Shown: piece after piece, positions 3,205-49,940 of the stretch
Position numbering within the stretch: position 1 is the stretch's first letter
Layout of the letters: every line of letters starts with the position of its first letter
From: Penicillus capitatus
Taxonomy: Eukaryota; Plantae; Chlorophyta
NCBI GenBank assembly: GCA_965649825.1
Contig: OZ287706.1
Location: 558,001-622,000, forward strand
Length of the DNA stretch: 64,000 nucleotides
Reading direction: 5' to 3'
Program-made: the position numbers and the translations under genes
Notes under the pieces: generated by a model
Told to the model about the DNA's origin: nothing
Seen by the model: only the letters and a program-made list of their open reading frames with translations
The model's database searches: none

Positions 3205-5498
3205 ATGGCGAAAATGGGCTTAACGCTCACAACGCTCCTTCTTTGCTTGTTGCTTTCTGCGCCCTGCCTCTCGTTCGCCCGCTCAGGTGTCAGCGCCGTC
3301 AGCAAGATAGATGCCTTCCGACCCGATGATGGTCTGTGGATTTTAGACTCCGGTGGACGCCGCGACTTGACGTCTCCCCTCGGCTTGGGAGCCCGGAAGG
3401 CCCTGTCCTTGACACACGGCTCGGGGCGAGATGCGAATACATTATGTCCTATACTGGAGGGCGCGAAAGGCAGATTCCCTTACCTCTGCAGTCTTCGCAT
3501 GCCCGGGAGCGGAAATCACGTCTGCGGCGCCACGCTTGTTGGCAACCGATGGGTCATGACGGCGGCGCACTGCATCGATCCAACCTACCCAAATTCGGTC
3601 GGCTGCTATCCAGTCATCCACTGCGACATTGACCAGATCGACGCCATATCCGACGAGAAAGTAACACAAGCACCGACGAGGCACAAGATGGTGACCCCAT
3701 TGTATTGGCCTCCCGTTGTAGACGTTCACTGTCGAAGAGGCCTACATCCACCCTGCATGGACAGGGAAAATCTCAGGGGGATCCGACATCGCCGTCCTCA
3801 AGCTCGACAAAGAAGCAGACGTGGAAATGCCACGACTCTTCCGAGACGGGATGTACTACGGCACAGAGACTCAGATGGTGACGCCCGGATGGGGTGTTGG
3901 GAAACAGCATAGGCAGTGTGGCATCCAAAGCAATATCCCTCTCCGCTGGGTCGCCAACAATCAATGCCCGAAGCAGTTGCAGATCGTCCCTAAGAACAGC
4001 TGGCTCTGTTTCTGTGAAGGCAAGAAAAAGGACAGAACAGGTACAGGACAGAATTCTGTGCATCTGATGGTATGGACGTCTGCGTCGTTTTAGGTCTAGA
4101 GGGAGCTCCCCTTGTTATGGCTGATTGGCCTTATGATGATCTGGGCAAGGGATACCCATCAGAGGATCTGATTGTCGGTGTCATGTCATTTGATCCCCCT
4201 TACCCAGTCTGCGGCCAGTGCTCCATTCATACCAGTGTGTCCTATTACAGAGACTGGATAACGAAAACGATGGCAGAATCGATTTCGCCGACCAAGTGTT
4301 TGCCGAAGCCCAAGATGACGCCCTTCTCAACAGAACACGATGAAGGCTGCGAGCCGCCTTACGAGGTAGATTCCATCCGTCCCTTACCATCGTGTTGCCC
4401 GATCTTCGACTGAATTCGATCGATCACTCTACGACGGCGATGCCGATTTCATGCACCTCGTGCGTTTCTGATGCTCGACTGCACTCGTGCTTTGTTTGCA
4501 GTTTTGCGAGACGCCTAAGGATGTCCCCGCCGTGTGGAAACCAATAACGATCCCGACGTTCACATGTGATACTTCCAAACCACGGGAAGCGTGCGGTACG
4601 TGCGCCCACCTGCGTCTAGCGCCTTCGCATTTGCTTGTGATTCCAGGAGACCCCGGTGTCGATGGACAGACCTGTCTTAGCCTTGACTGCTGCTGGAGTC
4701 CCTTGGAAGAAGATTCGACAGAGGCGTGGTGCTTTAAACCGACACCAGGGGCGGAATCGACGACGTCTCCGACGCTCTCGAGCGAAGGCTTCTCCTGCAA
4801 TCCTCAGGCAACCTTCCTCAACGCTTGTGGTAAACGATCTGTTCGAAGCCTTGCTCGCGTTCAAAGAGTTTCCAGGAGACTCTGGGTTCCAGAAAGAGCA
4901 GTGTGAGGCCAAGGGCTGTTGCTGGTCGGAGCGTAAAGATGGCAAACCGCAGTGCTTCTTCAAGAACGCCGGATTTAAGTACTGCGCTGAACAACTCTAT
5001 CGAAGCCCCTGTGGTAGGTATTCTGGCGGCGGCGTTCCTCGACGGTGATGTTTTCTGTGGGATCGGACAGGCAACAAAGACACTACTAAGGCTGAATGCG
5101 ACTCGCGTGGCTGCTGCTGGAACAAAATGGATAACGGTCCAAGTTGCTTCCACAAGAACTCGAATATGGAACAGTTCTTCTGCCGAGTCCCCGGCATGTT
5201 CCGCAAACCGTGCGGTGAGCTCGCTCCCTTACTGACGCACAGTATGAGATATGGCGGCGTTAAGGTGGTGTAGGGAACGAGGTTTCGAACAAACAGGCTT
5301 GTGAAACGTCGAAATGCTGCTGGTGGCCGCTGGCAGATGGCGTCTCGGGTCCATGGTGCTACAAACCGTCGATCTCGATTCCTCCTGCAAACACGAATAC
5401 ACTCCCTCGCTATCCAGGTGAGACAACGGACAGCTGCGTCGAACGACGCTTCAAGTGAAGAAGGCGCAAGCTCATCGTTCTGTGCAGTCGTGGTGTAG
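3205..5498 (+). CDS. Secreted trypsin-fold pseudoprotease (Ser195->Glu) followed by four trefoil (P-type) domains
   Basis: Signal peptide, HVCGATLV, TAAHC and SDIAVLKL are present; the nucleophile motif reads GLEGAPL after splicing. Four CG...C...CCW...(W)C[FY] trefoil units follow. Introns: 3661-3721, 4041-4093, 4366-4501, 4596-4646, 4830-4875, 5014-5070, 5215-5273. The last exon is uncertain (stop at 5498 if spliced, 5458 if not). Confidence 0.85.
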
Positions 5499-13153: not shown

Positions 13154-16100
13154 TCATGTCGCAATCAAAAAACAGACCAGTTTGTTCATTGGATTCTCGA
13201 TGACGCCCAGTTCCATGCAGCTGGATTCCAAGGCAGGAACGAGATACAGAGTGATGTTGAACCCTTGGAGGTGCACAACGCCAGCGGCTTTACGGCCCTT
13301 GAGATGTCTCAGTAGTTTGTGGAAGAGGCGATTGGGCACAGTGGGAGTGATCTGGAAGAAGTGATGCTCGATTTTCTTGATCGCTGGGTTTTCGGCCATT
13401 CTGGAAACATATGTCATAGGAACTCTTGCCTCGATCGTGAGCTGAGGAGGTAATGAAATGGGACACTCTGCAGTGGCACCAGTGATTTCGCATTCGCGGA
13501 AGAAGATCTTGCCGGTCCATGCACCGTCCGGAGGCTGCTGGGGGATGCTTGGCTGCGTCACCTGGGCAGGATTGTCGACGGGCTGCTGATCCTTGACGTC
13601 TCGAGCGTTTCTGTAGGCATCCAGGAGAAGAGATTGCTGACGAATGAAGTCATCTGGATCCGCCTGTCCGTCTTCTTGGAACATGGAGAAGGCGACGAGA
13701 TTGCACATCAGATCATCGTCATTGCCGACACCACTCGATGGATGGCCTGTCCAGTACGAGGGGAGAGGCTCGATGATTTCGATTTCAGGTGTCTCGCCAG
13801 AACCCGATGGAGCCATCGGGTCTGTTGGTGCGCTTCTTCCAGAGGGGCGAGACGACGAAGACGACTCGGGTACGAACGTTGTCCTCAGATTCGGATGGTT
13901 GTGTCCACGGGCAGGACTCCGTTGCGCTGCTTCGACTGGCAGTGCATTGGAAGACTCGTGCGCATGAACACAACCACGACTTGCTGAGAAGCCTCCGTGT
14001 GCGGGACTGCGTCGATCTGCATCGAGCGGCAGATCATTCGCAGACTCATGCACAGGTCTCTTTCCAAGCATGTTCAGATAGTCTTCGTACGTCATTGCTG
14101 CTTCCTCTTTGACAGTAGATGCTTGCTCGCAGGCAGGCGACACGTGTGCAGATCCATCGATAGGGCTTTGATGGATCTCTTCGTGCACAGGCGTTTGGCA
14201 TTCCGCTTCGGCGGGCATGGCTTCGGACGGTTCCGTGACAGGATCATCCACTGGGTTCGATGGACTGCAGTGCACTGGAGTGACGCATTCGAGTTCCGTC
14301 GGTATGGCTTCAGATGATTCTGGGACAGCGGGTACAGGATCACGGTGAAGAGTTGGATACCTTCTGGTGGGCTCCGGAGTGAGACACTCGGCTTCGTCTG
14401 GTGCAGCTTCTGGCGATACATGTGCAGGATTCTCGACGGGGCTTAACTGGTAGAGTTGACGCAGTCGAGTGACGTAATCAATTTGGGCTGGAACGGCTTC
14501 AGACGACTCAGGTGCAAGTGCATCGTCACGGAAACGACATGAAAATCCTATGGTGGGCTCTGGTGTGACACATTCGGCTTCATGTGGTGCCTCATCTGGC
14601 GATTCAAGCGCGGGATCACGGAGAAGGCCTGAGTGTCTTCTGGTAGGCTCTGGTGTGACACATTCGGCGTCGTCTAATGCCTCATCTGGTGATTCGGGTT
14701 CAGAATCACGGAGAAGGCCTGAGTGTCTTCTGGTTGGCTCCGGCGTGACACATTCGGCGTCGTCTAATGCCTCATCTGGTGATCCGGGCTCAGTATCACG
14801 GAGAAGGCCTGAGTGTCTCCTGGTAGGCTCTGGTGTGACACATTCGGCGTCGTCTAATGCCTCATCTGGTGATCCGGGTTCAGAATCACGGAGAAGGCCA
14901 GAGTGTCTTCTGGTTGGCTCCGGCGTGACGCACTCGGCTTCATGTGGTGCATCATCTGGTGATCCAGGCACCGAATCACGGAGAAGGCCTGAGTGTCTCC
15001 GGGTAGGCTCTGGTGTGACACACCCGGCTTCTTCTGGCGCGTCATCTGGTGACCCGTGTAAAAGATCGTCAGTGAGGATAGGACAGGCTCTCTCGTATTC
15101 GTGCAAATGAACATATCTCACACACGAGGAGGCTTGATGTAAAGGACGATGTTGCATGCTTTTCTCGGTCGGCAATGAATCTGATATGGATAATTTGCGT
15201 GAAAGCTCTTCGACGAGGAAGGATGATTGGTCGTTGTCAGGTAGAGGTTGTTGCTGTTCTGCGTCGGTTGGCTTACTTGTCGAAGACTCAGCATCGAAGT
15301 CTTCTTCTTTAGGGCTTGGACAGACATCTTCGCAGTGCACAGGTTGCTGCAGCTCCACATCAGTGGGAAGAACTGTCGAAGACTCGGCGTGACAGTCTTC
15401 GCTAGGGCTTGGAACGGCATCTTCATCTTCAGCTTGCTTCTTCTCCTCTTCAGTTGGCAGGACTGTCGAAGGCTCATCAGGAACACCTTCTCTATGGCTT
15501 GGACAGTAAACATCTTCTTCTACAGACGCTGGCTTCTCCGCACCCTTTGACAGGGCTTCAAAGGACTCGTGCATGGGCTGCTCGATTGGACTTGATTTGT
15601 TGTTGTCATCTTCAGCTTGCTGCTCCACTGCAGCTGATACGACTGTTGAAGACTTATTCGGAACGTCTTCTTTATGGCTTGGAGATGCATCTTCTTCGTG
15701 CACAGGTTGTTTGTCTTCTGCTTGGGTCGATAAGACTGTCAAAGACTCGACCGCGACTTCTTCTCCGGGACTTGATGTTTGTGGAGTCGGATTAGGAATG
15801 TCTGCTGGCTTTGGTCGAGATTCTTTACTGTTGGACTCCTCTTCTACAGTGAACAAGAGATTTCCATTATAAGTACACTGCAGGTTCGTTGTACTTTGGG
15901 TAACTGCCTTCGTCTCTCTGTACTTAGGCGCCGAATGACTTGCAGGCGCCTCTGCTGTTCGGGATTTCTTCGGCTTTCTCTGGGCTTTCTTATCTGCAGT
16001 GTCTCTGGTAGTAGCCTCTGTCGGTGCATCAAACGTGTCCGGGTCGGATTCAGACGCCCTGGATACAGATGGACTCTTGCGCTTGGCTTCTGTGGCAAAT

Positions 16101-18396
16101 CCACGATCTGCCTTCTTTCTGTCTTTGGTGTTTACAGTCGATGTCTTGACCCTCCCTAAAAACACGGTGATTCGTATCCCCGATCTGAATAAACGATCGA
16201 TGAGCATGCATCGGCAGAACGATGCTCGATGCTTCGCGACTCAGGCACCTTCAGCGAGGGACTGTGTAGGCCGTTCGCGGCTAGGACCGATGTCGGCAGC
16301 AGGATCAGACCAGGACAGAGATCTCGGCGACACGCGGCGTTCCTGGCTCGCCTCTTCTTCGCGAGGTAGCAGATCGTTCCTCGATCTCTTTTTCACAGGA
16401 TAGCGACGATCGAGATTCCTAAGCGCGGGCTGCAGGACGCGCAAACACACCGTCATCTTCTCGATCGTCGGAGCTTCGATCAAGAATCCTGCGGATAGAT
16501 CACTCTTTGAAGAATGAGCGTCATCAGTGAGGTTGGGGCACCCTTTCGGATAGAGTCGTCGACTTTGATGATGTGCTGCGGAGCACGGCGGCCGTCGCTG
16601 TCAAAGCATCTGACCAGATCGTGGATCGTTGAGTGCGCATGCGATGCGTCCATCCACAGGAAGGCCGAGTAGTACTCATCCCTCATGCACCGTACGGATG
16701 GAACCAGCATGAATGCTGGGCGTTCCGTTTCGTATTCTGGATTCCCTTTCAGCCCTTGGTAACACTTCAGGGCCTCCCTAGAAATGACAAGTGAGATCGG
16801 ACTGATCGGAAAGCACTGTTCCAAACTTTGCAGAATCGAACACGACGAGAGCTCTGGCGAGCGAGACTCGGGGAAAGAGAACTCCGGAAACCCTTCCATA
16901 CTCGTTACATGCATCACTAATGTCACCGTTTCTCAGGTTTCCAGGCAGAGCCATGAACCAGATGACGGGTCCGTACTGGTCGGCCACCGAACAGGATGCG
17001 GATCCTGCATCCAACCCACTCATTATCCCCCGGGAGCCTTCCTGAACCTACCGCGCTCAAAATCCCTGCTCAACATGACCGGCGGATCATCGATGGGTGT
17101 GGCAGGGATCTGAGGGGCGTAGGGCACGGGCCCAGTCGGCGGAAGGGACTGTCGTCCGGGTTGGTCCTGCGGGAGACTGGGTCCAGACTCGACGCGATGG
17201 CGCAGCGACTTCTTCGGACGCCCTTCTCTCTCGTGTCCCAGCTCTTTTGCTTGCTTGTCCTCTATCAGTTTTCGTCGAGCTCTGGCCCATTTGGCGGCGT
17301 AGGCGTCCGCTGTCGTGCGCGATCGAAGTCCATCCGGTCCGGAGCGGGCGGCGAGGTGTGACTCTTCTGGACATCCTTCGTGCTCTCTCTTCCTCTCCGC
17401 TTCCTGTATGCGGATGAGGACGTTCCTGAGATTGTACACGTGTCTCATGTACGAAGAGTCCGGATGCTGTGTGTGCTGCCTTCCTGCACGGGTCACCCAA
17501 ACGATGCGTCAGCCACGTCGTGTCGCATCATCGTTGATCTCACTTTCGATGACGCTGTTGAGCATGTTGAGCGTCCATCTGAGGAGATCTTTGTCGGAGG
17601 CGTGAATCTCGTATGCCAGACTGTAGTTGTCTGGTGTCTCTGGCGGCAGCAGGATGCGATTGAAAAAGACATTGGCCGACTCGTGATAAGGCTTGGACAT
17701 GTCTGTCCAGATGCGGACGCACTCGGACAATATATCTCTTGCGTAGTGCTTCAGCCCTTTGGCCAGGGCATTCAGAATCATCCAGCACTCGGTGCGCTCG
17801 GGGGTCAGATCGATGGGGATACCGAGACTGGTGCGTGAGTGATCCATGTGCCTGCGAAGCTCGTACAGTTGCCTGCGGTCACACACATCACACCATGAAC
17901 TTTGCTGCTGTGTCGCTAACCGGAAGAGATGTGGTATGATCTTCATGAAGTGGGGCCTCATGTCCGGTGTCGTCCACTCGAACATGTCGTCGAGGACTGT
18001 CAGCGCGTCGTGACGCGTCTCTTCGCACAGACTGCGCTCTCGTTGAATCCGAAGTTCCGGTCGCCAGGAACTGATTTCGATCAGCGCAGAGACAGTCGTG
18101 CCGATGTTGGCCAGGTACTTCGGCGCCATCCTCCTCAGCATTCGCGCGGCCAGGCGTTTCTCCTGTGGCGTTTCCGACCGTGCGTGTTGCAGCACCGAGT
18201 GGTACCAATCTTCATCGTATGGCCCGTCGTCTGGCTGGGCCGCCTGGAACAACTTGAGGATTCGAAATAGGTCCCGAATGGGTTGCAGATTCGGCGCCGC
18301 CGTCGTCTCGACGGGGTTGTGCCGAGATCGACTGGTGACCCGACTGGATGACCCCTGCGGTGAACGTCTGCGTTTGCCGCGCATATCGTGATCCAT
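13154..18396 (-). CDS. ~1600-aa multidomain protein: API5-like helical N-terminus, RRM (+ RRM-like), acidic tandem-repeat region, C-terminal SPOC domain
   Basis: Six ORF segments join in frame through GT-AG introns of 60, 47, 49, 53 and ~78-93 nt. YHSVL...EKRLAARML...RHDAL matches the API5 N-terminus. VIWFMALPGNL...YGRV...RALVVFDSAKEALKCY is an RRM. WTGKIF...LPPQLTIEARV...LKGRKAAGVV...LYLVP is SPOC-like. Confidence 0.75.
14551..15060. repeat. Coding 90-bp tandem repeat (5 full units + 1 partial, degenerate copy at ~14365)
   Basis: Units start at 14551, 14641, 14731, 14821, 14911 and 15001. On the minus strand they encode ECVTPEPTRRHSGLLRDSEPGSPDEALDDA. Confidence 0.95.
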
Positions 18397-18601
18397 CGTA
18401 AAGGAGATTCGCAAATCCGAGTTCGCAGGAAAAACACAGTTCGCAAAAACAAACGAACGAACGAACGTACGTACGAACAGTCATTTAAATCGCAAAAAGG
18501 ATGGAATCGTCTCGATGATTACTCACCGACAAGATGTGACGTTCAGCATCGGTATCAAAACGCATTCAGCAGATCGCGCGTTTCGATCACAACGATCGAA
18601 A

Positions 18602-18955
18602 ATGGAGATCGACGGCATGGACAAGCAACAAGCATCGCCGGAGGAGCAATGCGAAGAAGGCACGGACCACTCCGTGTGTCTGGAATTCGACGAGGATCTC
18701 CAGACATTTCATGACGTGACGCCCAGCACCTGCGGTTTTTGCGTCGAGCACAGCGTCGATAGTATCGCCTTGGCAAAACAGCGATTGCAGAAGAAGGGGC
18801 ACCAGGAGACAAATACCGTCGAGTCGAACCAGCACCCACCCTCGCGTTTTGCCTCCTCTCACCATCGCCGCCGCGCTTCCTTCTCAGACTCCCTCTCGGA
18901 TATCCGAGATCGATTCCGACGTACGTTTGCCAGCGTCAGAAGGTCGGCGGAGTAA
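18602..18955 (+). CDS. Hypothetical 117-aa protein, divergent from the API5-like gene
   Basis: ATG-initiated ORF (MEIDGMDKQQ...) with protein-like composition and no recognisable domain. Confidence 0.3.
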   Translation: MEIDGMDKQQASPEEQCEEGTDHSVCLEFDEDLQTFHDVTPSTCGFCVEHSVDSIALAKQRLQKKGHQETNTVESNQHPPSRFASSHHRRRASFSDSLSDIRDRFRRTFASVRRSAE

Positions 18956-20386
18956 GAGGAGGTGAATCGCGACGGTGGCACTGATGATGGCGAGATGATG
19001 CAAAGACGAACTTGAATGCCACGGACGCGTTTGTGCATAAATCGAATCTACGGCTCCTCTTCCAGTTGTGAAATTGCGTGTCCTACGTTTGCCTCTAAAA
19101 CGTGCAGACGATGCGACATCTCCTTTCAGCCACTCGACAATCGACGCCCTTCGAACAACGTTGAAAAAATAAAGCGTGTCGCGATGCGTTTCGCTAATGT
19201 ACAGGAGCAACGTGCGTTACTGCTGATGCTTCCCGAAAAATGAAGGACTGTCGAAAGCGACGTCGACAACGCCTTGGCCATCTACCTTTCGAGTCCACAC
19301 TACCTTCCAGACCCCGACATTCCCTTTCGTAATGCCCCGAGGCTCTACTGGAAGGGCGCTCTGTGTTTTTCGAAAGCCATCGTCGCCAAGACACCCCAAA
19401 TACAAACAAGTGAACATTCTGCTTGCAGCTGTTCTCCGGAAAACGAATCGTGATGCAGCGGTTATGATTCACCCAGAAACAGGGCTGCGTACCAGTTCAG
19501 CAGCACGTGTCTTCTTGCTGTATCGCAGGGCCATTGGCATGGTGGTGTATTGTGGGCATCAGGTGCTGAACGGCGGTCAACGCAATCCCGAGAAGACCCA
19601 TTCGCCTCAGAACGCATCCCTGAGCTGCCGCACGGACGTCGTCTTTCACCACAGCGTCGAACCATGTCCATCACCCGATGCCAAAGAGAAACCCTGACAC
19701 CATCGGACTGTTGTCCTTGAGCTGCACCGAGACAGGTTCGCGTCGTTTCGTTTAGTGACTTGGCTTTCGCGACCTTCTCCTGTCAGGCGGCAGGACATCT
19801 TCCCGCACGAAGTCGGGACAGAACCACCACAGAGACGGCGTCAAGATGGAACGAGTGAATGCACTATCGAATACAGTGGCGCGAAACAGACCCCGTTGAC
19901 TGTTGCACGTTGCCTTGTGTGGATGCCGTTCTGGCGATGAACATGGAAGCGGCAAAGTCATCTTGAACAGAGCGATTCTGGACTATGGAACGCCACAGTA
20001 AACTTTGCGATAGCCTATCGAACGGTGACGATTCCAAGACGTTCCTTGTCTTGTGAAGACTCTCCCTTGTAACTTCAATCGTTTTTTTTTTCTCATGCAA
20101 ACCCACGGACATGCCAGTAGCCGCTTTGAAGGCACCTGCTGAAGAATACGTGAAATGGCGATTTACAAGTTTGCGTGCGGTGAACAAATTAGAGATCTCG
20201 TTATTTGCAGTTAATATGCGAATCGGCGAATTGTCCTGGAAACAAATCCTTCCCCTTCAGTCAAAGAGCACCCGCCCCCGAACACCCAAAAATGCATTAA
20301 ACATTTAATCGAGTAGAAAAGATACCGCATCAACAGATAGTTCCTCTGGAAATAAAAATCAAAAGCTAGACTGCGTGCATAGATCC

Positions 20387-21908
20387 TCACGACTTTTTGG
20401 AGAGCTTCTTCACTATCTTCGTGATCCACCTTTTCGACTGTCTGACATCAACATACAGTCCCGGAAAATCCGCTTTCCCGCAGACATCAGACGGATCCTT
20501 GAGATGTGCGATAGCCACGAGTTTATCGCGTTTGGATGTCGTATCGATCAGCGGCCCTCCTTCGTCTCCAGCACAGAACTCCGCTTTGTAATCCGTACAG
20601 AGGATACGCCTCCGCAAAGCTGTGTCGTACGCTTTCTCGCAATGCGCTTTACTGAGAAGGGACACCTTGGCCACCTGAAGGTTAGATGCAAATCCGCTAT
20701 TCTCAGACTGCCTTCCCAGTCCAACAAAGTCCAACGCATCCGCCGTTTTGCGCGTCTTTCCTTGGATCTTGATCGGCGTCTTCTTGGACGGTTTACTCAG
20801 CTCGATCACGGCCAAGTCGTACCCGTTGCCCAGATTTCTGGCCTTGTCGCCCACGAACCATTTCGGATGTATCTCGATTCCTGCCACATCTCGAGCCTGA
20901 AGAGAAGGGGCTCGTGCGCATGACAGACAGAAGGAGGGAGAACTTCAGAGAAATCGGTGTGACAATAGTTTCCGTCGTCATCAGTGCTGCGTGCATTCAA
21001 CGTGACAAGCCGAATGGATCGTCCTCCCGTTCCGTCCACGCAATGTGCGGCCGTTAACACCGCCCTCTCCGCTATAAGCACGCCGCCGCAGACATGGCGA
21101 TAGCCATTGACTAACGACGTGCGCAGAGAAGCAAAGTAGGTGTACCTATCGCAGGGAGCATCCACGCTGACAATAGAGGCCGCATATCTCAGTTCTCTTT
21201 CCAGAGACCTCCCGTCTGGTCCCGTTTCCAAGACGAGTCGGATGTTGTTCTGCAAAAATGCCATCGACTCTATCGCCTTTGCCAGCTGCTTACCCATCCA
21301 CAGGTTTGTGTGACGATCAAACGGATGAAGCTCTGAATCGCTGTCCTTCTTTCGTTCTCTTCGCGGCAGCGTCTTTTGTTGGAGAGACGGCAAAGTCTGT
21401 TGAAGAGGGAGATTTTGTCGCCGCAGTCGAAATCGTCGTTGAGAAGCATGTCTTCGACGACATGAAAGCTGCCCCAGATGACGGCGTACTCGATGAGCGT
21501 AAAAGCTCGATAACCAAATCTGGCGAAAGGGTAAGGGACGATTCTTTTGATATCTAACGAAGCTCCGAGCTCTCGAAATCGGACGATCGAATCGACATCG
21601 TCCAGTTCCGCCGCAGTGAACAGAGCTTCTGCGACGGAACAGGGCACGAGGGCAGCTCCAGGGTACTCAGTGGAGTTCACGGCCCTCCTGCACTTCGTCG
21701 AATTCTGGACGAAGCAGGTTGGCTCCATCGGTGACTCGTTCCGCAACGCGCATCTTGGCTTTTTGATTTCGACGCCATTACTCAGACGATTGGCCGAGCA
21801 GTCGCACGCATTCTGACAGAGGACAGGGTGAACGAGAGACACGACCAGCGTTAGCAGAATCCTTCGTGTTGCAGCAGCGGCTTGGCGATGCGACTTCGTT
21901 TTCTCCAT
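20387..21908 (-). CDS. Secreted Cys-rich/ankyrin-like/trypsin-fold pseudoprotease (GDEGGP)
   Basis: The ORF at 22007-21270 splices (44-nt intron gtaagc...ttgcag) into the trypsin ORF, with a second 47-nt intron. TAAHC and YDLAVIEL are intact; the Ser motif reads FCAGDEGGPL. Confidence 0.85.
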
Positions 21909-22646: not shown

Positions 22647-24155
22647 TCAACTGCCTTGCATCGTTCTTTGTGTTCTCCCGATCCACCACCTCAATCTGGC
22701 CACATTGGTAAACAGTCCAGCAAAGTCAGAGTGGCCGCAGACGTCCGAAGCGTCTTTCAGGTGCGCGATGGCAACGAGCTCATCTCCGTTGGCGCCTGTG
22801 CTGATCAGCGGGCCTCCCTCGTCTCCTCTGCAGTACTCTCGCTCTCTTGTGGTGCACAGGACGTTTGTCGGGAGGTTTCTTCCGTAGTCTGCCTCGCAGG
22901 CGCCTTCGCTTTCGACGTTCATGTTTCCCACCTGTACGACAGATGCAAAACCGCTGTTCCTCGATTGCCTTCCCAGACCGACGAATCTCAAAGCGTCGCC
23001 CGCTTTGACCACTCCGCGTCCCTGAATGGCGATGGGCGTCTTGCTCGACGGCTTGTTCAGCTTGATCACCGCTAGATCGTATCCATTTCCCAGATTTTGA
23101 GCGCTATCGCCCCTGAACCAGTAAGGATGGATCACAATCTGCGCTGCCTTCCGAATCTGACCAACAGTCGATGTCGTCCGTGGAGATGTTGAGAGAGAGT
23201 ACGCACTTCTGGCTGTTCTCGGCAGTTGCTGCCTGTGCTCTGGACATCGCGAGCATCGATCACGAGGATGGGCACAAAGTGTCCAGTGGATCCGTCCACG
23301 CAGTGCGCTGCCGTCAGCACCGTCTCCTCCGAGATGAGTACACCCCCACAGATGTGCCGGTAGCCCTCGACGAAGGAGGAACGGACGGAAACAAAGTAAG
23401 GATGGCGCTCGCAGGGGGCGTCCACGCCAGGTGCCACGCGCGTCGCGGGGAGAAACGCGTCTTGTATCGGAAAAGGGCCAAAGCTCGCGGTCTGTGGACT
23501 CCCTCCCCCGACGGCAACTGGCTCCTGAAACAGAGAACCCTTGCAAGTGTCCTTGCAATGTAGCCTCTCTTGTTCAACTTACTGCTTTGCAAGCCGACGA
23601 GAATGAGAAGGCGACGAGATCTTCGATCGCTTGCTTTCGGTGGTCACCGGGGCGACACTGTGGCTCGTCGGACAGCAGACAGAGATGATCCAGAATGGAA
23701 CCTCGGTCTCCACAGCTGAAGTCCTCGTTGACCAGCAGATCTTCGACCGTTTGGAAACTGCCGTGCGCTCCGGCGAACGCGGCAAGCGGGACGACGCGAG
23801 GGTTCGTGTCGCCGAAGGGGACGGCTCTGGAGATCGTCAACGACGCCCCGAGCTCGCGGAAGCGGGCAACGCTATCGACGTCGTCTCTCTCCGCTGCGAA
23901 GAACAGAGCTTCTTCCGCTGAACATGGAACGGTTGCCGCGCCGGGATACTCCAACGATCCCGCCGCAGCGGGACAGTCGACCGAGTTGTGCACGAAGCAC
24001 TCGGGCTGCGTCGACGCGCTCGAAGGCAACACGCACCCCGGTTGATTCGTCTGAACGCCGTTGCTGTGGCCATCTGTAGTACAGGCGCATCCTTGTTGTG
24101 CCGAGCAGGGATAGAGACAGAGGGCGAGGATGGCCAATCGGAAACTTGTGTACAT
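22647..24155 (-). CDS. Tandem paralog: secreted Cys-rich/ankyrin-like/trypsin-fold pseudoprotease (GDEGGP)
   Basis: Same three-exon layout (58- and 50-nt phase-0 introns). TAAHC, YDLAVIKL and YCRGDEGGPL are present. The start could be ATG 24155 or 24209. Confidence 0.85.
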
Positions 24156-29206: not shown

Positions 29207-30636
29207 ATGATCCGCGCATCGAAGCCGCACGGTCGACTACTGGACAGCGCGTTTCGAACAGCGGGTTCGAAGCGTCGTGCGAATCTGCGACGCGACTCCA
29301 CTAGGCGACGGGTTCAGAAATCAGAGAACGACGTCGCCGTTTCGAAGGAGATCCAGTCGACGACCGGCCGAACGCAGCGTCTGTGGTCCAACCTCGACCC
29401 GGAGACGCTCAAACACGAGCCTGGAAACGTCTTCGGCGCCGCCGCCCTCGTGGCAGGCACAACGATCGGCGCCGGCATCCTTGCCCTCCCCGCCGTCACC
29501 CAGGTCTCCCGACAGCCTTCTGCCTTTCGAACGAGAGCAGTGCTTCTCAGGAGTCCGGCTTCGTCGCGTCGAGCGTCGCCATCTGCGGCGTCTGCGCTTT
29601 CTCGGTGGTCACGGGGCTCCTCATCGCCGAGGTCAACATAAACACGATGTGCGAGCTCGGCTCCGGAGGCGTCTCGCTGACGTCCATGGCTGAAAGGACT
29701 CTGGGTCCTCTGGGCACGCGGGTCTCGAGCGCGGCCTACGTCTTCCTTCACTACGCCCTCCTCGTCGCCTACATATCCCGAGGCGGTAGCATCCTGAGCG
29801 AGTGGCTCGACGTGCCTCCGTGGACAGGTGGCATCATCTTTGCCTTGCCGCTCGGCGGCCTGTGCTACGCGTCCAGCACCAAGACGCTGAACGTCGTCAA
29901 CTCTGCTCTCGTGGCGTGCGTCATCGGATCGTTCCTGAGTCTGCTGCTGGTCGGCAGCGGAGGCATCCAGCTCGACAACCTCGCCAAGGCAGACTGGTCG
30001 GCTGTTCCCGCAAGCCTCTCCATCCTGTCCCTGGCCTTCGTCTACCACAACATCGTCCCAGTAGTGGCGTCGGACCTGGAAGGCGACATCCAGAAGGTGC
30101 GCACGGCCGTCGTCTTGGGCACAGTAGTGCCGCTGATCATGTTTCTGTCGTGGGACGCCACGATACTCGGATCCGCCTCGTCTGGTAGCGCTGCAGATCC
30201 TCTGGGAGCCCTACAGTCGAGCAACCCGCTCTTCTCGCCGCTGGTGCAGAGCTTCTCTCTGTTTGCACTGGCCACCTCATACATCGGATTCGTTCTGGGC
30301 CTCGCGGACTTCATCTCCGACGCCGTGAAGTTGCCCTCCGGTCGACAGCCCGTTCCGTACCTTGTCGCATTGCTGCCGCCTCTGGGACTGGCGTTCACCT
30401 ACTCCGATGTGTTCTTTAAAGCCCTGGACTACGCCGGGACATACGGAGTGCTCGTCCTGTTCGGCGTGGTTCCAGCTCTGATGGCTTGGAGCGAGCGATA
30501 CGGCGGAACGACGGTCACGTCGACGCAGATCGTTCCAGGAGGTCGCCTGGCGCTCATCTTCATCGGAGGAACGGCGGCTGCCGTCATTGCCAATGAGTTT
30601 GCCGAGCTGATTAGCAGCATCGGGCACTCCAGCTGA
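29207..30636 (+). CDS. Aromatic amino acid (Trp/Tyr) permease, TyrP/Mtr family, probably plastid-targeted
   Basis: GNVFGAAALVAGTTIGAGILALP, LSLAFVYHNIVP and FALATSYIGF motifs are present. One intron, 29504-29550. The N-terminal extension is Arg/Ser-rich. Confidence 0.9.
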
Positions 30637-45043: not shown

Positions 45044-45261
45044 TGTCATTGGGACGAACGCGCTTCGCGTCGGCCATGGGTGCTGCGTAGCAAATATTTT
45101 TAAAAAACCAAAACGTTTCTTACACACAACTCATCATGAGTCTCTATTTAATGCTTTCGATCGCAGCATCCCATCAGTTCTGTCTGTCGCATCGGACCGT
45201 CATCTTCCCGATCCCTCGTCACCAATGTGACATCATGGTTCCGTACCATGAGGAGTTCACA
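45044..45261 (-). repeat. 3' LTR
   Basis: Identical to 49723-49940. On the minus strand it contains a TATA-like CATTAAATAG and a TGTAA poly(A)-type signal. Confidence 0.97.
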
Positions 45262-45464
45262 CGCTTCTCTGCGCGATCAAAACTCCGAAGGGATCTCCGT
45301 TCCACTCTGAGCTCCTTAGCTCGTTGCAGTGGTCAACAGCTTGAAGATTCGATAGGCGTATCACATTAGCCAGCCCTCAAGGGCCCGGGATCTCTACCCA
45401 GTGATGTACCAACGGAAGACAGTCTGAGCGCTTCACTCTTTGATGACCCTCTCCCGATAGAGTG

Positions 45465-48260
45465 TCATACATAAGGCCTCAAATTGTCCACATGGCAAAT
45501 GATCTTCTGACTTGACCCAATACGTCTCAATCGGCAAATATGCGGTGAACACTGTTCGACGATCACAAAGGGCCCAACCCAGAAGGGACTCAGTTTGTCG
45601 TCGAGCCTTTCCATCCTCACGGCATCGAAGACCCATACTTCCTCTCCGATGGATGGCTGAAACGGTTCCATTCGTCCAGAAACCCCGAGTTCTTTGTCTC
45701 GAGCTTCTTTGGTCCTCCAAGCGGCAATCTGTCTGTCTCTCGTCACCTCTTCAAGTGTAGCCTGCCGACCTCCGATAGTGATGCCCGACCATAGGTACCA
45801 AGGAGCGAATCCGGTAATGCTGTGCGGCGCCTGGTTTGTGCAGTCGACTGCCAATGGCAGCACGTCGATCCACGTCTTTCCAGGGTGATCGAGCAACATT
45901 CTGCGCAAACGATTGACCAACGTCTGATTCCATCGTTCGTTAAGTCCGTTCGAATGATGGGCATGCGGAGCAGTCAGTATACTCTGAGCGCCCCATTCCT
46001 CTGTCCACGCGCTGAAGGTCGGCGAGCTAAAATAGCTTGCTCGATCTGACAGAATTCGCTTAGGGGCTCCATTCTCTCGAAACCACCATTCCAGCCCTTT
46101 CTGAGCTGAAGCCGTCGTGGATCGCTTGAACGCCATAGCCGCTCCCAGCCTTGTCAAATGATCGACCATTGTAAAGACATAACGTACCCCCGTACGGGCA
46201 GCCCGTAGGGGGCCAACGAAGTCAATAGAAATGAGTTCTCCAGCACGGAGGGGTTCGGGCAGCCGTCCCAACGGCACGGTCCTGACCTTTGGTTGAAATT
46301 GTTGACACACACGACACTGACGACAATAGGCTTTGACTTCCTCCCGTGTAACTGCTAATCCTAGTTCTTTGGCAATCTCCCAGGTCTTTTCCGCTCCGAA
46401 GTGCCCCGCGTGAGCTCCGGCCAAATCCGATGGCCTCTCTCTCATTGTGGAGGCCGTTATACCACTTGACGAATCCGGAAATAGCTCGCTCTGCCTCGAG
46501 AGAAGATCTGGCAGCACATTGGAGTGCCCCGGCAAGAAACGCAACCGTGGGCAACACTCCTGGATTTGGTCCAGCCGTCGTCGGATGAAGGGACTTCGAT
46601 TGTCTGCATTTGCGAGGCTGGCCACCGAAGCGTTGTCACTGAACACCGTCACTCTTCCTCCAAAGATCCATGGTTGAAACTTGCGAAGGGCTTTGACCAC
46701 TGCCTCCATTTCCAAGTGATTCGAAATCTGATGCTTCAATGCTTGCGGCCACAAACCAGAAGCACAGCAAATTATTTGCTTTTGTTGCAATAGCACTGCA
46801 CCCCAGCCACTTCCCGACGAGTCCACTGCGATGCCAAAGTCCGCTGTTTCTTTTGCGTGTGTACATGCCACTGTGTGTTGTTCCAATCCACTCAGAAATG
46901 TCTGCCAATCCTCCACCCTTCCCGATTCTTCCGCCTTCCGTAGCGCACCTTGAACCACTCTGCCGTTCACCACGAATCGAACAAGTTGCTGGAACCAGCC
47001 CTTGATCGCTCTCCATTCTGTTTGCGTTCTGGGAGGCTGTAGCTTCTGAAGGCGTGCTATCGCTGAGGCACTTGCACGCCAACCTGTTGGAGTCACAACG
47101 TGTCCCAAGAAGTCAAATACCTCTTGCATGAAGGAGCACTTATCCGGTCGCATTCGCCATCCCCGTTTTTCCAGAATCTGGAGTACTTGGCGTAGATCTC
47201 GGAGATGTTCTGGTACTGATTGCGAGAGCAAAAGAATATCATCCATGTAAACCACCACTTGGCTCTGCACTGCTTCATCCATTTCTGCAATCGCAGGTCT
47301 CAATGCTCTTAGGAATTCACTAGGTGAATTGACGTATCCGAAGGGGAGTCGTTCGTAGACGTAGAATTTCCGTCGCAAACACACTCCAAAGCAATGATGC
47401 AGCTTGGGAGCCAGCTCTACTTGGAAATACGCGTTTTGCAAATCGATTGCTGACCCGACCACATACGGGCGCACCCCAGCGATCGTATGCTCTCTATTCA
47501 CTGCCAGGAAGGGCTGCGCTTCTACGCACGAGTTCAGCTTTCGAAAATCGAGCACCAATCGCACATCTCCAGTTTTTTTCGGAATACAGAACGCCGGGAT
47601 CAAATATGGCTCTTGGGACGTCTCCCTGACCACCCCCAACTCTACTAACTTGTTGATTTCTTCTAGAACTAACGACTCTTCGCTGGGTGATATGGAGGGC
47701 GATGATTGTTGTCTTGTCAGGCGATGCTGAAATGGGATATCTGTCACCACATGATCGACACATTTCCCAAGATTGCCACTGGTTAAGTCGTGGAATTCTC
47801 GCAATATATTCTGCAAATCTTCTCCATACGCAACAATGCTTCTCAGCGGCAACGGAATTCCTCTTTCTGTCAACGGAATTTGCCCTCTGTCTGGAACCAG
47901 TACATGCGTCACATTGGTTTGGATGATGCACAGTGGCATCCTAGGCGTCAAATGTTGTGGCATCCGACCTCGATTCTCTAGCATTCCCCATACCCTACAT
48001 CCATTGCTCTGTGGAGAAAACCTGACTCCTGGGCAAGTCAGCGCGTCCGTGATGGACCCTAAACTTCCCTTGACAAACTTAACGGGAAGGATAAGCTTTC
48101 GGCATTCCCCTGGACCCAGCACCCACGATCTGTTGAAAGGGAGTACCAGATAGCAGTTTCTCAGAAATGGAAGGTATAGAGGGGTCTCCAGCAACTCAAA
48201 GCTTAACACCACTGGGCTGGATTCAGTGATGCTCCTTGGATGTTTTTTTGCCCTTTTAGC
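45465..48260 (-). CDS. pol: pol ORF (dUTPase-like, RT, RNase H, integrase), entered by -1 frameshift
   Basis: RT VVYMDD. RNase H DSS..E..D..D. Integrase HHCC (AHAGH...CRQC) and DDE (IDF, SDR, NERWN), with a C-terminal GPF motif. Confidence 0.95.
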   Translation of the reverse strand, partial: AKRAKKHPRSITESSPVVLSFELLETPLYLPFLRNCYLVLPFNRSWVLGPGECRKLILPVKFVKGSLGSITDALTCPGVRFSPQSNGCRVWGMLENRGRMPQHLTPRMPLCIIQTNVTHVLVPDRGQIPLTERGIPLPLRSIVAYGEDLQNILREFHDLTSGNLGKCVDHVVTDIPFQHRLTRQQSSPSISPSEESLVLEEINKLVELGVVRETSQEPYLIPAFCIPKKTGDVRLVLDFRKLNSCVEAQPFLAVNREHTIAGVRPYVVGSAIDLQNAYFQVELAPKLHHCFGVCLRRKFYVYERLPFGYVNSPSEFLRALRPAIAEMDEAVQSQVVVYMDDILLLSQSVPEHLRDLRQVLQILEKRGWRMRPDKCSFMQEVFDFLGHVVTPTGWRASASAIARLQKLQPPRTQTEWRAIKGWFQQLVRFVVNGRVVQGALRKAEESGRVEDWQTFLSGLEQHTVACTHAKETADFGIAVDSSGSGWGAVLLQQKQIICCASGLWPQALKHQISNHLEMEAVVKALRKFQPWIFGGRVTVFSDNASVASLANADNRSPFIRRRLDQIQECCPRLRFLPGHSNVLPDLLSRQSELFPDSSSGITASTMRERPSDLAGAHAGHFGAEKTWEIAKELGLAVTREEVKAYCRQCRVCQQFQPKVRTVPLGRLPEPLRAGELISIDFVGPLRAARTGVRYVFTMVDHLTRLGAAMAFKRSTTASAQKGLEWWFRENGAPKRILSDRASYFSSPTFSAWTEEWGAQSILTAPHAHHSNGLNERWNQTLVNRLRRMLLDHPGKTWIDVLPLAVDCTNQAPHSITGFAPWYLWSGITIGGRQATLEEVTRDRQIAAWRTKEARDKELGVSGRMEPFQPSIGEEVWVFDAVRMERLDDKLSPFWVGPFVIVEQCSPHICRLRRIGSSQKIICHVDNLRPYV
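48187..48250 (-). promoter_or_regulatory. -1 programmed ribosomal frameshift signal (A_AAA_AAC + H-type pseudoknot)
   Basis: In-frame slippery heptamer at 48248-48242, 8-9 nt spacer, stem 1 GCATCACTG/CAGTGGTGT. Loop TCCAGC pairs with downstream GCTGGA. A -1 shift joins the two ORFs. Confidence 0.85.
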
Positions 48261-49756
48261 TCATCGAGCTCAGTTTGGAGTCTTTGCATTTCTTCGAGGA
48301 GATGGGTCACATCAGTTTGGTTAAGGACCTTTAGCTGTGCCTGCGTGCATGTTATTTCTTCACCATTTCTGCGCCAGATTCTCTTTTCTTGGCAATCAAT
48401 GAGAAGTTGATTTGTAGCGAAGAAAGGGAATCCCAGGATGAGCGGCGGGCCTTTGCCTCCAATCACAAACGCTTCCATCTCATATGGATGGTCATCTATA
48501 CGGGCTTCGATGTTTATGCGTCCCAGAATTGGAGAGGCACTTCCATTTCCCAGCGAAACGTATAGGTTTCCACACTGTGTTACTCTCTGCTGGATTCCCA
48601 ATGCTTTCACAGTAGCCTCTTGAATGAAACATGCAGTGGCGCCAGTATCCACCAAACCACTGATCTTGGTCCCTTCGATGCAGGTCGGCACGTTCATGCT
48701 AGCCTTTTCCACCGGGGAAATTCGAGAGCAGACCAGAGGGTAACCCTTGTACATGGTATACAGCCCTGGTTTCGAAAGAACATCCCCGTCTTCTTCGGTC
48801 AGTTCAAGCTCCAAAGGATCGTCAACATCTTCGGTTTCGGTTTGTAAAGCCCTGAGTTGGGTGGCCGGCCTCGCGTCAAAGGAGTTCGAGGCGAGATATT
48901 TCTGCGCTTCTCGTCGAAAACGGGGCACCCGCATCAAACGTTTCCATGCGATCATCACATGGTTCGGGTTATTGATGTCCAACCGTCGGTGTTGCCCGCT
49001 TGATGGCTGCGATGTTTCTCCACCCACAAGTGGAAGTTCCAATCTGGCGGTCTCCGGTTTGCCACTAGCCTTTTGTCGACAAGTAGCTTCATCGAGGTAT
49101 TCGACCAGTTGTCGATATGAGTATTCTCCAGCGTCCGTCATGGCCAGCACCTCGAGCTTGTTTCGCACCAGCGTCTCTATTTGTATCAAACTCAGTCCGG
49201 CTTTTCCGGTGTGGATCAATGCCCGACGTATCTCTTCAGGCATTTGATGATAAAGGATCCGGACGGCCTTCTCCATCGACACCTTTTGCTGGGCGACAAA
49301 GGACCGGGCTTCCCGAACGAAACGGTCCACGTAGACGAGTAAGTTTTCCTTCGCTACATCACGTTTCATGCTACGGAGCTGGTCCTCGGGCGCCACGAGG
49401 TCATCTTTCGGCAACAGCGCTGCCAAACGTTTATTCAATACTTGCCAACGAAGATCGTCTACTGCGGTTTCTTCGGACGCCGTTTCACCTCCAAGCTCTT
49501 CGCGACATGCCTTTTCGTCCAGGCGTCGGACGGCTTTTAGCTGAGGCAAAACAAGTTTCGAGGCTGCCGACTGGGGTTCGAGGCTGTCCAACAACGCTCG
49601 GTCTCGTTCACGTCCTACCGCCGTAGTGATTTCCAGCGATTCAAACAACCACTCGTGAATGTCTCGAGTATACTCCGAGTAAACAAGCCAGGTTCTCGTT
49701 CGAGAACCTCGCTCCGAAACCATGTCATTGGGACGAACGCGCTTCGCGTCGGCCAT
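48203..49756 (-). CDS. gag: gag-protease ORF
   Basis: 517-aa ORF with aspartic protease motif GLVDTGAT and ILGFPF. It starts inside the 5' LTR. Confidence 0.9.
   Translation of the reverse strand: MADAKRVRPNDMVSERGSRTRTWLVYSEYTRDIHEWLFESLEITTAVGRERDRALLDSLEPQSAASKLVLPQLKAVRRLDEKACREELGGETASEETAVDDLRWQVLNKRLAALLPKDDLVAPEDQLRSMKRDVAKENLLVYVDRFVREARSFVAQQKVSMEKAVRILYHQMPEEIRRALIHTGKAGLSLIQIETLVRNKLEVLAMTDAGEYSYRQLVEYLDEATCRQKASGKPETARLELPLVGGETSQPSSGQHRRLDINNPNHVMIAWKRLMRVPRFRREAQKYLASNSFDARPATQLRALQTETEDVDDPLELELTEEDGDVLSKPGLYTMYKGYPLVCSRISPVEKASMNVPTCIEGTKISGLVDTGATACFIQEATVKALGIQQRVTQCGNLYVSLGNGSASPILGRINIEARIDDHPYEMEAFVIGGKGPPLILGFPFFATNQLLIDCQEKRIWRRNGEEITCTQAQLKVLNQTDVTHLLEEMQRLQTELDELKGQKNIQGASLNPAQWC
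49704..49722 (-). promoter_or_regulatory. Primer-binding site, initiator-Met-like
   Basis: TGGTTTCGGAGCGAGGTTC directly abuts the 5' LTR and resembles the plant iMet PBS TGGTATCAGAGCCAGGTTTC, with mismatches. Confidence 0.7.
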
Positions 49757-49940
49757 GGGTGCTGCGTAGCAAATATTTTTAAAAAACCAAAACGTTTCTT
49801 ACACACAACTCATCATGAGTCTCTATTTAATGCTTTCGATCGCAGCATCCCATCAGTTCTGTCTGTCGCATCGGACCGTCATCTTCCCGATCCCTCGTCA
49901 CCAATGTGACATCATGGTTCCGTACCATGAGGAGTTCACA
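49723..49940 (-). repeat. 5' LTR
   Basis: Identical to 45044-45261. Confidence 0.97.

Follow-up and report, generated by a model that had tools for sequence, protein, structure and literature searches.

Our analysis of a 64,000-nucleotide (nt) stretch of Penicillus capitatus DNA (contig OZ287706.1, positions 558,001 to 622,000; hereafter the window, with a G+C content of 52.9%) identifies on its minus strand one gene of six exons, whose ATG begins at position 18396 and whose stop codon ends at position 13154 (Table 1). When the segment from 18700 down to 13000 is translated, six open frames follow one another, the frame changing at short gaps, and these frames join without loss of phase across five GT-AG introns. 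An original prediction, made from the letters of the window, had placed the gene between exactly these limits, from stop to start, and had read the six open reading frames (ORFs) as pieces of one gene rather than as six. That reading is upheld by the in-frame splicing, by intron positions kept in an orthologue, by the ratio of non-synonymous to synonymous substitution rates (dN/dS) and by relatives of the Caulerpa clade in which the protein forms one chain. From its N-terminus, the encoded protein comprises a basic segment, a HEAT/ARM-like helical head of ~300 amino acids (aa), a basic Pro-rich linker, an RNA recognition motif (RRM), a further conserved segment of about 110 aa (region 2), an acidic Ser/Thr/Pro-rich stretch of ~830 aa and a SPOC-type domain. 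It is probable, in our view, that this is a nuclear gene for a Spen-like RRM-SPOC protein, and that the protein represents a very divergent member, restricted to its lineage, of the plant branch of API5-RRM-SPOC proteins.

Table 1. Coordinates of the six-exon gene and of the segments of its protein, as positions in the window
Feature	Position	Strand	Description
Whole coding sequence	13154..18396	minus	ATG to stop, six exons; 4,941 nt, 1,646 codons, single terminal stop
Exon 1	17544..18396	minus	aa 1-284 + 1 nt; conserved N-terminal MD..R.KRKRS and the greater part of the helical domain
Intron 1	17484..17543	minus	60 nt, GT-AG, contains an in-frame stop; intron of orthologue L001 identical in position and length
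Exon 2	17052..17483	minus	aa 285-428; end of the helical domain, basic coiled stretch, Pro-rich motif
Intron 2	17005..17051	minus	47 nt, GT-AG; position kept in L001 (49 nt there)
Exon 3	16827..17004	minus	aa 429-487; RRM beta1-alpha1-beta2-beta3
Intron 3	16778..16826	minus	49 nt, GT-AG, inside the RRM; position common to L001 and L007; absent in the Caulerpa clade (contiguous)
Exon 4	16542..16777	minus	aa 488-566; RRM helix 2 and beta4, then first half of region 2
Intron 4	16489..16541	minus	53 nt, GT-AG; sole intron position shared with the Caulerpa-clade locus L008
Exon 5	16249..16488	minus	aa 567-646; remaining half of region 2, basic linker
Intron 5	16156..16248	minus	93 nt, GT-AG; position kept in L001 (77 nt there)
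Exon 6	13154..16155	minus	aa 647-1646 and stop; acidic Pro/Ser-rich low-complexity middle and C-terminal SPOC
N-terminal all-helical HEAT/ARM-like domain	17347..18291	minus	about aa 36-330; includes intron 1
Near-invariant Pro-rich motif GRQSLPPTGPVPYAPQIPATPIDDPPVMLSRDFERG	17056..17160	minus	aa ~393-427; directly before the RRM
RRM	16651..16954	minus	about aa 446-530; single, with degenerate RNP1 (ARALVVF); includes intron 3
Degenerate acidic ~30-aa repeats	15245..15727 (approximate)	minus	..ED.CPS.REDC.AESSTV.PTE.EQQQPVH..; read from the translation
90-nt (30-aa) tandem array	14551..15056	minus	SPDEALDDAECVTPEPTRRHSGLLRD(S/T)EPG; Tandem Repeats Finder, 5.6 copies, 86% matches
SPOC-type domain	13157..13522	minus	about aa 1525-1646, reaching the extreme C-terminus

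A search with exon 1, which is 60% identical to P0002, retrieved two ORFs from ENA metagenomes, 99% and 60% identical to it, whose contigs carry the loci L002 and L001, respectively. An exhaustive search of 1.84 billion representative proteins with an N-terminal profile hidden Markov model (HMM) at E≤0.001 found six family members, and the start codon is kept in every one of them; two scans of metagenome contigs found no relatives. In the orthologue L001, which codes for a protein of 1,772 aa, each exon is conserved at 47-58% identity (tblastn; ~61% over the aligned spliced proteins) and the five GT-AG introns (60/49/53/49/77 nt) lie at identical codon positions, so that protein conservation breaks off and resumes exactly at the junctions predicted in the window. 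Between the two genes, dN/dS (Nei-Gojobori) ranges from 0.16 to 0.46 across segments, with 0.35 overall, at a synonymous divergence (dS) of about 0.7; none of the six exons reaches 0.5, and the lowest value is that of exon 2 (0.16). The gene is thus under purifying selection.

The only named homologue is a protein of Caulerpa lentillifera (g1460.t1 in EukProt, our P0009), a member of the order Bryopsidales in the phylum Chlorophyta, which bears out the chlorophyte origin assumed in the original prediction. Its 665 aa hold the head, RRM, region 2 and a SPOC-like tail in one chain. A second Caulerpa-clade relative (P0008, locus L008) encodes head, RRM and region 2 in one ORF of 461 aa, followed by a single intron at the position of window intron 4 and then by a SPOC exon. 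The clade of the window gene thus has five introns versus one in L008, and L007 carries additional introns inside the head, lineage differences that should be useful to date intron gain and loss in Bryopsidales. Within this order, the diploid genome of Ostreobium, whose closest sequenced relative is Caulerpa, has a G+C content of 52.4% (10.1101/2020.07.21.211367).

The protein begins with the conserved basic sequence MD..R.KRKRS, which resembles a nuclear localisation signal, and the KRKR motif in it suggests that the protein resides in the nucleus. The head that follows was modelled by AlphaFold2 as 11 helices, with a mean predicted local distance difference test score (pLDDT) of 58.7. Junction 1 falls within it, and across this junction the Caulerpa protein is continuous, without any break. 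The original prediction had noticed by eye a resemblance of this part to API5, and we recovered it with both profile HMMs and hhalign. When the family head profile was searched against the PDB, API5 chains were its only two matches (E about 1.5), with the match at the N-terminal end of both proteins and in the same order. Two of the six family members are matched by the Pfam API5 model at about 1e-4, with 21 bits where the cut-off is 27.4. The hhalign comparison of the head family with human API5, whose sequence was verified as identical to 3U0R, gave a score of 35 (P=4.9e-4, HHsuite probability 32%), about 10 standard deviations above 200 shuffled controls (14.2±2.1, maximum 21.2) and also well above the reversed sequence (15.4). 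A match of the window protein to UCH_1 (PF13423; 20.5-21.6 bits against a cut-off of 22.2) was discarded as spurious, as it occurs in one of the six members and lies in a region predicted to be all-helical. Between the head and the RRM, the Pro-rich motif GRQSLPPTGPVPYAPQIPATPIDDPPVMLSRDFERG is preserved almost residue for residue in L001 and is absent from the Caulerpa clade; it belongs to the exon under the strongest constraint and may act as a docking peptide.

The central region contains one RRM. The alignment of this region (A5) matched the SETD1B RRM first among PDB sequences (E=1.1e-4), and nearly all of the 33 other matches were RRM proteins, including SETD1A, ZCRB1, RNPS1, TDP-43, p14, SPEN and Nrd1; direct comparison with U1A RRM1 by hhalign gave P=3.5e-4. 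The domain is completed by splicing, as had been proposed: the sequence RALVVFDSA/KEALKCY spans the junction of exons 3 and 4 (16827/16777), between strand beta3 and helix 2, and the corresponding stretch is contiguous in Caulerpa-clade homologues, ALVVFQSSKEAYHC. With this RRM lying N-terminal to the SPOC-type domain, the family profile shows the arrangement by which RRM-SPOC proteins are recognised, namely at least one RRM ahead of a SPOC. The plural "RRMs" of the original prediction has to be given up, since a single RRM_1 stretch was found and not the three tandem RRMs of SPEN, RBM15 and FPA. Region 2 was considered as a second RRM (aa 531-620) and rejected, as it gave no RRM signal in either the PDB profile search or hhalign.

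The long middle of the protein (aa 621-1455) is rich in Asp, Glu, Pro, Ser and Thr, has an isoelectric point of 4.6 and contains 17% hydrophobic residues, a composition that points to about 830 aa of disorder. It includes the two kinds of repeats listed in Table 1, which the original prediction had correctly noticed, the 90-nt period being confirmed by Tandem Repeats Finder. The degenerate acidic repeats are present in higher copy number in L001. The 30-aa unit, SPDEALDDAECVTPEPTRRHSGLLRDSEPG, occurs in 6-7 copies in the window versus 12-13 in L002, owing to one in-frame indel of 210 aa (seven extra units). Phosphorylation of the SP, TP and RRxS sites is plausible. Caulerpa-clade proteins lack the long middle. 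An antisense ORF of 186 aa lies over the 90-nt array on the plus strand (14550-15110); we take it as most likely an artefact rather than a gene, because its repetitive translation merely mirrors the repeats.

At the C-terminus, the similarity to SPOC domains becomes stronger as further relatives are included. With five sequences, a SPOC profile matched only the SPOC domains of RBM15 and FPA in the PDB (E about 1.3); with L007 and L008 added (alignment A6, six sequences), the FPA SPOC structure 5KXF was reached at E=3.7e-4, the match covering positions 17-126 of the 138 in the profile. The Pfam SPOC model matches five of the six members, with a best E of 9.4e-5. Foldseek against 350,542 chains placed SPOC domains of FPA, SPOCD1, RBM15 and PHF3 on top, followed by the MED25 ACID domain; each of the top eight matches was either a SPOC domain or MED25 ACID, a relative in the Pfam clan of SPOC, and bacterial Ku, of that same clan, ranked 13-15. 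This fold comparison is supporting evidence and not structural proof, given that the underlying AlphaFold2 model is poor (pLDDT 40.8) and its result is thus partly sequence-based. Together these matches agree with the C-terminal SPOC that had been predicted. The motif K/R-x-AAGV is shared with RBM15, SHARP and FPA, and the motif YL(V/I)P is also kept. In the HMM alignment to 5KXF, Arg1557 of the window protein (IEARV) occupies the column of FPA R477 (SARTD), the numbering of FPA having been verified through K447, R477, T478, Y515 and R521 (PMC4981400). This arginine is conserved in SHARP (PMC4981400), and phosphoserine binding depends on the equivalent residue of SPEN, R3552 (R1248 in PHF3) (PMC10111866).

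The window gene belongs to a family with further copies, some of them degenerate. Positions 14509-21384 of the window are 100% identical to part of the ENA contig ERZ25074695:ctg339056, and the same contig holds a second intact copy (L002; 9989-15861), which is inverted and lies at a distance of about 51 kb from the window copy; it encodes 1,856 aa with the same gene structure and is 96-98% identical at the nucleotide level. The flanks of L002 are rearranged and homologous to the window at 25-32 kb. A simple allele was rejected on account of these flanks and of the presence of both copies on one contig; L002 is either an inverted segmental duplication or the product of a fold-back assembly of two haplotypes. 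The same sample also contains two degenerate relatives: a paralogue (L004; 5160-10564) with a head 63% identical and interrupted by two in-frame stops, repeats, a SPOC region 73% identical and no RRM exons, and a fragment (L003; 9524-10582) of which a short piece of the N-terminus and the SPOC region remain. In L001, L006 and L007, the gene has a BRO1-domain gene opposite it in head-to-head orientation and is followed by genes for Solute_trans_a, PMM and a protein kinase, and these common neighbours support orthology. In the window, by contrast with this ancestral neighbourhood, the gene faces at about 18600-19625 on the plus strand, head-to-head, a BRO1-domain fragment consisting of the N-terminal half only and containing an in-frame stop. 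The truncated neighbour and the absence of the others imply that the window copy was moved by duplication, the locus resembling a duplicated block that took part of its neighbour along.

Is this, then, one working gene? The coding pieces are listed as separate ORFs by prokaryote-style gene callers, and the model was read from genomic sequence, which leaves room for internal start or poly(A) sites and is a point against a single transcription unit. The pieces could be two or more genes, for instance a helical-head gene and an RRM-SPOC gene, or even chance ORFs. Every junction, though, keeps the reading frame, has GT-AG ends and is conserved at a dS of about 0.7, the coding pieces lie only 47-93 nt apart, with no space for promoters or terminators, and the Caulerpa clade has head and RRM in one uninterrupted ORF and an annotated protein that holds all the domains. 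The conserved intron positions and the one-chain relatives make separate genes so very unlikely that we hardly credit them. It is also unlikely, if less strongly so, that the locus is a recent duplicate, redundant or decaying, within a family in flux, and maybe not a working gene. Such decay would fit the loss of the neighbours conserved in L001, L006 and L007, the truncated BRO1 fragment, the inverted copy with rearranged flanks on the same ENA contig and the degenerate state of L004 and L003, and the position of the window copy outside the ancestral neighbourhood does weigh against the reading that we prefer. Nevertheless, its reading frame is intact through 1,646 codons, every splice site is preserved, and between the two near-identical copies the ratio of non-synonymous to synonymous differences per site (pN/pS) is 0.32 (22 synonymous and 23 non-synonymous differences), the sole length difference being the in-frame change in repeat number.

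The assignment of a single working gene to the API5-RRM-SPOC branch meets objections of a different kind, which are best taken together and which all reduce our confidence in it. No domain of the window protein reaches its Pfam gathering score: RRM_1 stands at 16.5 bits against 20.7 (16.5-19.2 bits across the family, all under the cut-off), SPOC at 18-20 bits against 25 (with all members under 25 bits), and API5 gives no match at all. By hhalign, the similarity to the SHARP SPOC is weak (P=0.04). The profile matches by which the original prediction could be checked exist for SPOC in five of the six members and for API5 in two, below the Pfam cut-offs in every case. The exhaustive N-terminal search of 1.84 billion representatives retrieved no plant API5-RRM-SPOC protein and no API5 protein at E≤0.001, so that orthology with the plant family is inferred and not demonstrated. 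Doubtful, but to be taken seriously, is thus the possibility that the head is unrelated to API5, being a generic or lineage-specific HEAT/ARM-like domain gained independently of the plant proteins, which would make this family a separate RRM-SPOC variant. Foldseek on the head model yielded generic ARM/HEAT matches only, none of them significant and with API5 missing from the top 50. The head has about 300 aa versus 536 positions in the Pfam API5 model, and the hhalign alignment is confined to API5 residues 5-107, matching the first ~120 head residues over about 100 residues at a probability of 32%; a full-length API5 solenoid of about 450-500 aa, above the Pfam cut-off, was not found. Moreover, shuffling is a lenient null where proteins are helical repeats. 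The eye-made observation of the original prediction is reproducible, but weakly supported. On the other side stand the API5 chains as the only PDB sequences matched by the family profile, N-terminal in both proteins and in conserved order, the sub-threshold Pfam matches in two members, the hhalign score far above its shuffled and reversed controls and the existence of the same three-part layout in plants. A comparable doubt attaches to the function of the SPOC domain, which might, with a likelihood well short of even, be a fold that does not read phosphoserine, as in SPOCD1 and TASOR, and act simply as a module for protein-protein contact or self-association. Some SPOC domains have indeed lost phosphoserine binding (PMC10111866); the domain of the window protein is short, about 125 aa, SPOCD1 is its second-best Foldseek match, and the basic patch is only partly kept, since the window clade has His in the Y515 column, Ala stands in the R521 column and the Caulerpa clade has Thr in the R477 column. 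Against such a loss speak the key Arg column, which has R1557 in the window, Arg in L001 and L004 and Lys in L007, and the K/R-x-AAGV motif, which fits RBM15, SHARP and FPA.

A more speculative alternative, which we regard as improbable, is that the family is more than an algal equivalent of the plant API5-RRM-SPOC proteins: it would evolve fast, be confined to Bryopsidales and have 30-aa repeats (SPDE…ECVTPEPTRRHSGLLRDSEP), variable in copy number, that mimic SPOC ligands and bind the protein's own SPOC domain. The motifs that SPOC domains bind are acidic and contain Ser (LSD, LSETD and LPDSD, for example), and the repeats would be phosphorylatable. If this were true, binding in cis or between molecules would produce a phosphorylation-controlled auto-inhibition or a multivalent assembly, and the duplications, pseudogenes and changes in repeat length would reflect ongoing selection, for example in a conflict with transposons or viruses within a giant multinucleate cell.

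For a divergent API5-RRM-SPOC protein, which is the reading that we prefer, a mechanism can be sketched by analogy with the families concerned rather than from the window gene itself. The RRM would tether the protein to nascent or nuclear RNA, while the beta-barrel of the SPOC domain would dock on a phosphoserine motif of a partner, be it the C-terminal domain of RNA polymerase II (Pol II), an RNA-processing factor or a chromatin factor. The helical head may provide a protein-binding scaffold, and the repeat-rich middle, with its many SP/TP and acidic Ser sites, would be a flexible and probably phospho-regulated spacer whose length is free to vary. We infer, on these grounds, a nuclear protein that binds RNA and phosphoserine and that may take part in transcription-coupled RNA processing.

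Elsewhere in the window, a Ty3/gypsy retrotransposon occupies 45044-49940 on the minus strand, with a gag-protease ORF at 48203-49756 and an RT-RNaseH-integrase (reverse transcriptase, ribonuclease H and integrase) ORF at 45465-48212; it is flanked by direct repeats of 218 nt (45044-45261 and 49723-49940), and the 100% identity of these long terminal repeats suggests a very recent insertion. At 52670-61162, also on the minus strand, a single ORF of 2,830 aa contains a VPS13 adaptor-binding domain (E=2.5e-32) and is probably part of a gene for a VPS13-like lipid-transfer protein. An ORF of the Trp/Tyr permease family lies at 29383-30636 on the plus strand (E=3e-57), and a copy of this region, 86-95% identical, adjoins L002. 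Two ORFs encode trypsin-like serine proteases (3205-3912, plus strand; 22647-23558, minus strand). Rfam and tRNA scans of the window found nothing.

The six-exon model corrects a gene that ORF-based callers fragment, and it extends to the siphonous green algae a little-studied type of protein, the API5-RRM-SPOC proteins, putative co-transcriptional regulators. It also indicates that three domains can diverge below every Pfam threshold while keeping their layout and the key SPOC arginine. The short form of Caulerpa (665 aa) and the long form of the window clade (1,646-1,856 aa) offer a natural pair to probe what the disordered spacer contributes. The gene does not represent a new class of system, because its three-part layout has already been described: plants possess a paralogous family of RRM-SPOC proteins bearing an N-terminal API5 domain of helical repeats (Appel et al. 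2023, Genes Dev; PMC10111866). The suggestion of the original prediction that such a regulator was possibly undescribed is thereby superseded. In our literature search, API5, SPOC, RRM and Arabidopsis were found together only in that review.

Among known systems, several share one domain or more with the window protein. API5/AAC-11 (PF05918; 3U0R, 3V6A, 6L4O) has the same all-helical repeat fold, and its residues 5-107 are co-linear with positions 41-159 of the family, a stretch that contains the (K/Q)EKRLAA motif spotted in the original prediction; by contrast, its remaining ~350 residues are unmatched, the similarity stays below the Pfam cut-off and API5 proteins have neither RRM nor SPOC. 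SETD1A and SETD1B provide the best sequence match for the RRM, which is non-canonical with a weak RNP1 in both cases, but the window protein lacks SET, N-SET and other COMPASS features, so that this likeness is limited to the domain. PHF3, DIDO and SPOCD1, of the TLD-SPOC family, share the SPOC fold and figure among the best Foldseek matches; neither a PHD nor a TFIIS-like domain is present in the window protein, whose motifs fit the RRM-SPOC branch better. Within that branch, the FPA/Spen family (SPEN/SHARP, RBM15, AtSPEN2) shows the same order of RRM and C-terminal SPOC, with the FPA structure 5KXF as the best PDB match, the motifs K/R-x-AAGV and YL(V/I)P as well as the R477/R3552 Arg column kept in the window protein and, in SHARP, a SPOC that likewise ends at the protein C-terminus. 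It differs in having three RRMs instead of one detectable RRM, in lacking the N-terminal helical domain, and in a SPOC that is neither shortened to about 125 aa nor marked by His in the Y515 column. The plant API5-RRM-SPOC proteins, functionally uncharacterised as well and likewise from Viridiplantae, combine an API5-like helical head, an RRM and a C-terminal SPOC in this very order. Compared with them, the window protein has all three domains under the Pfam thresholds and an API5 likeness of about 100 residues, and its clade carries the ~830-aa repeat-rich low-complexity insert that is absent in the Caulerpa clade.

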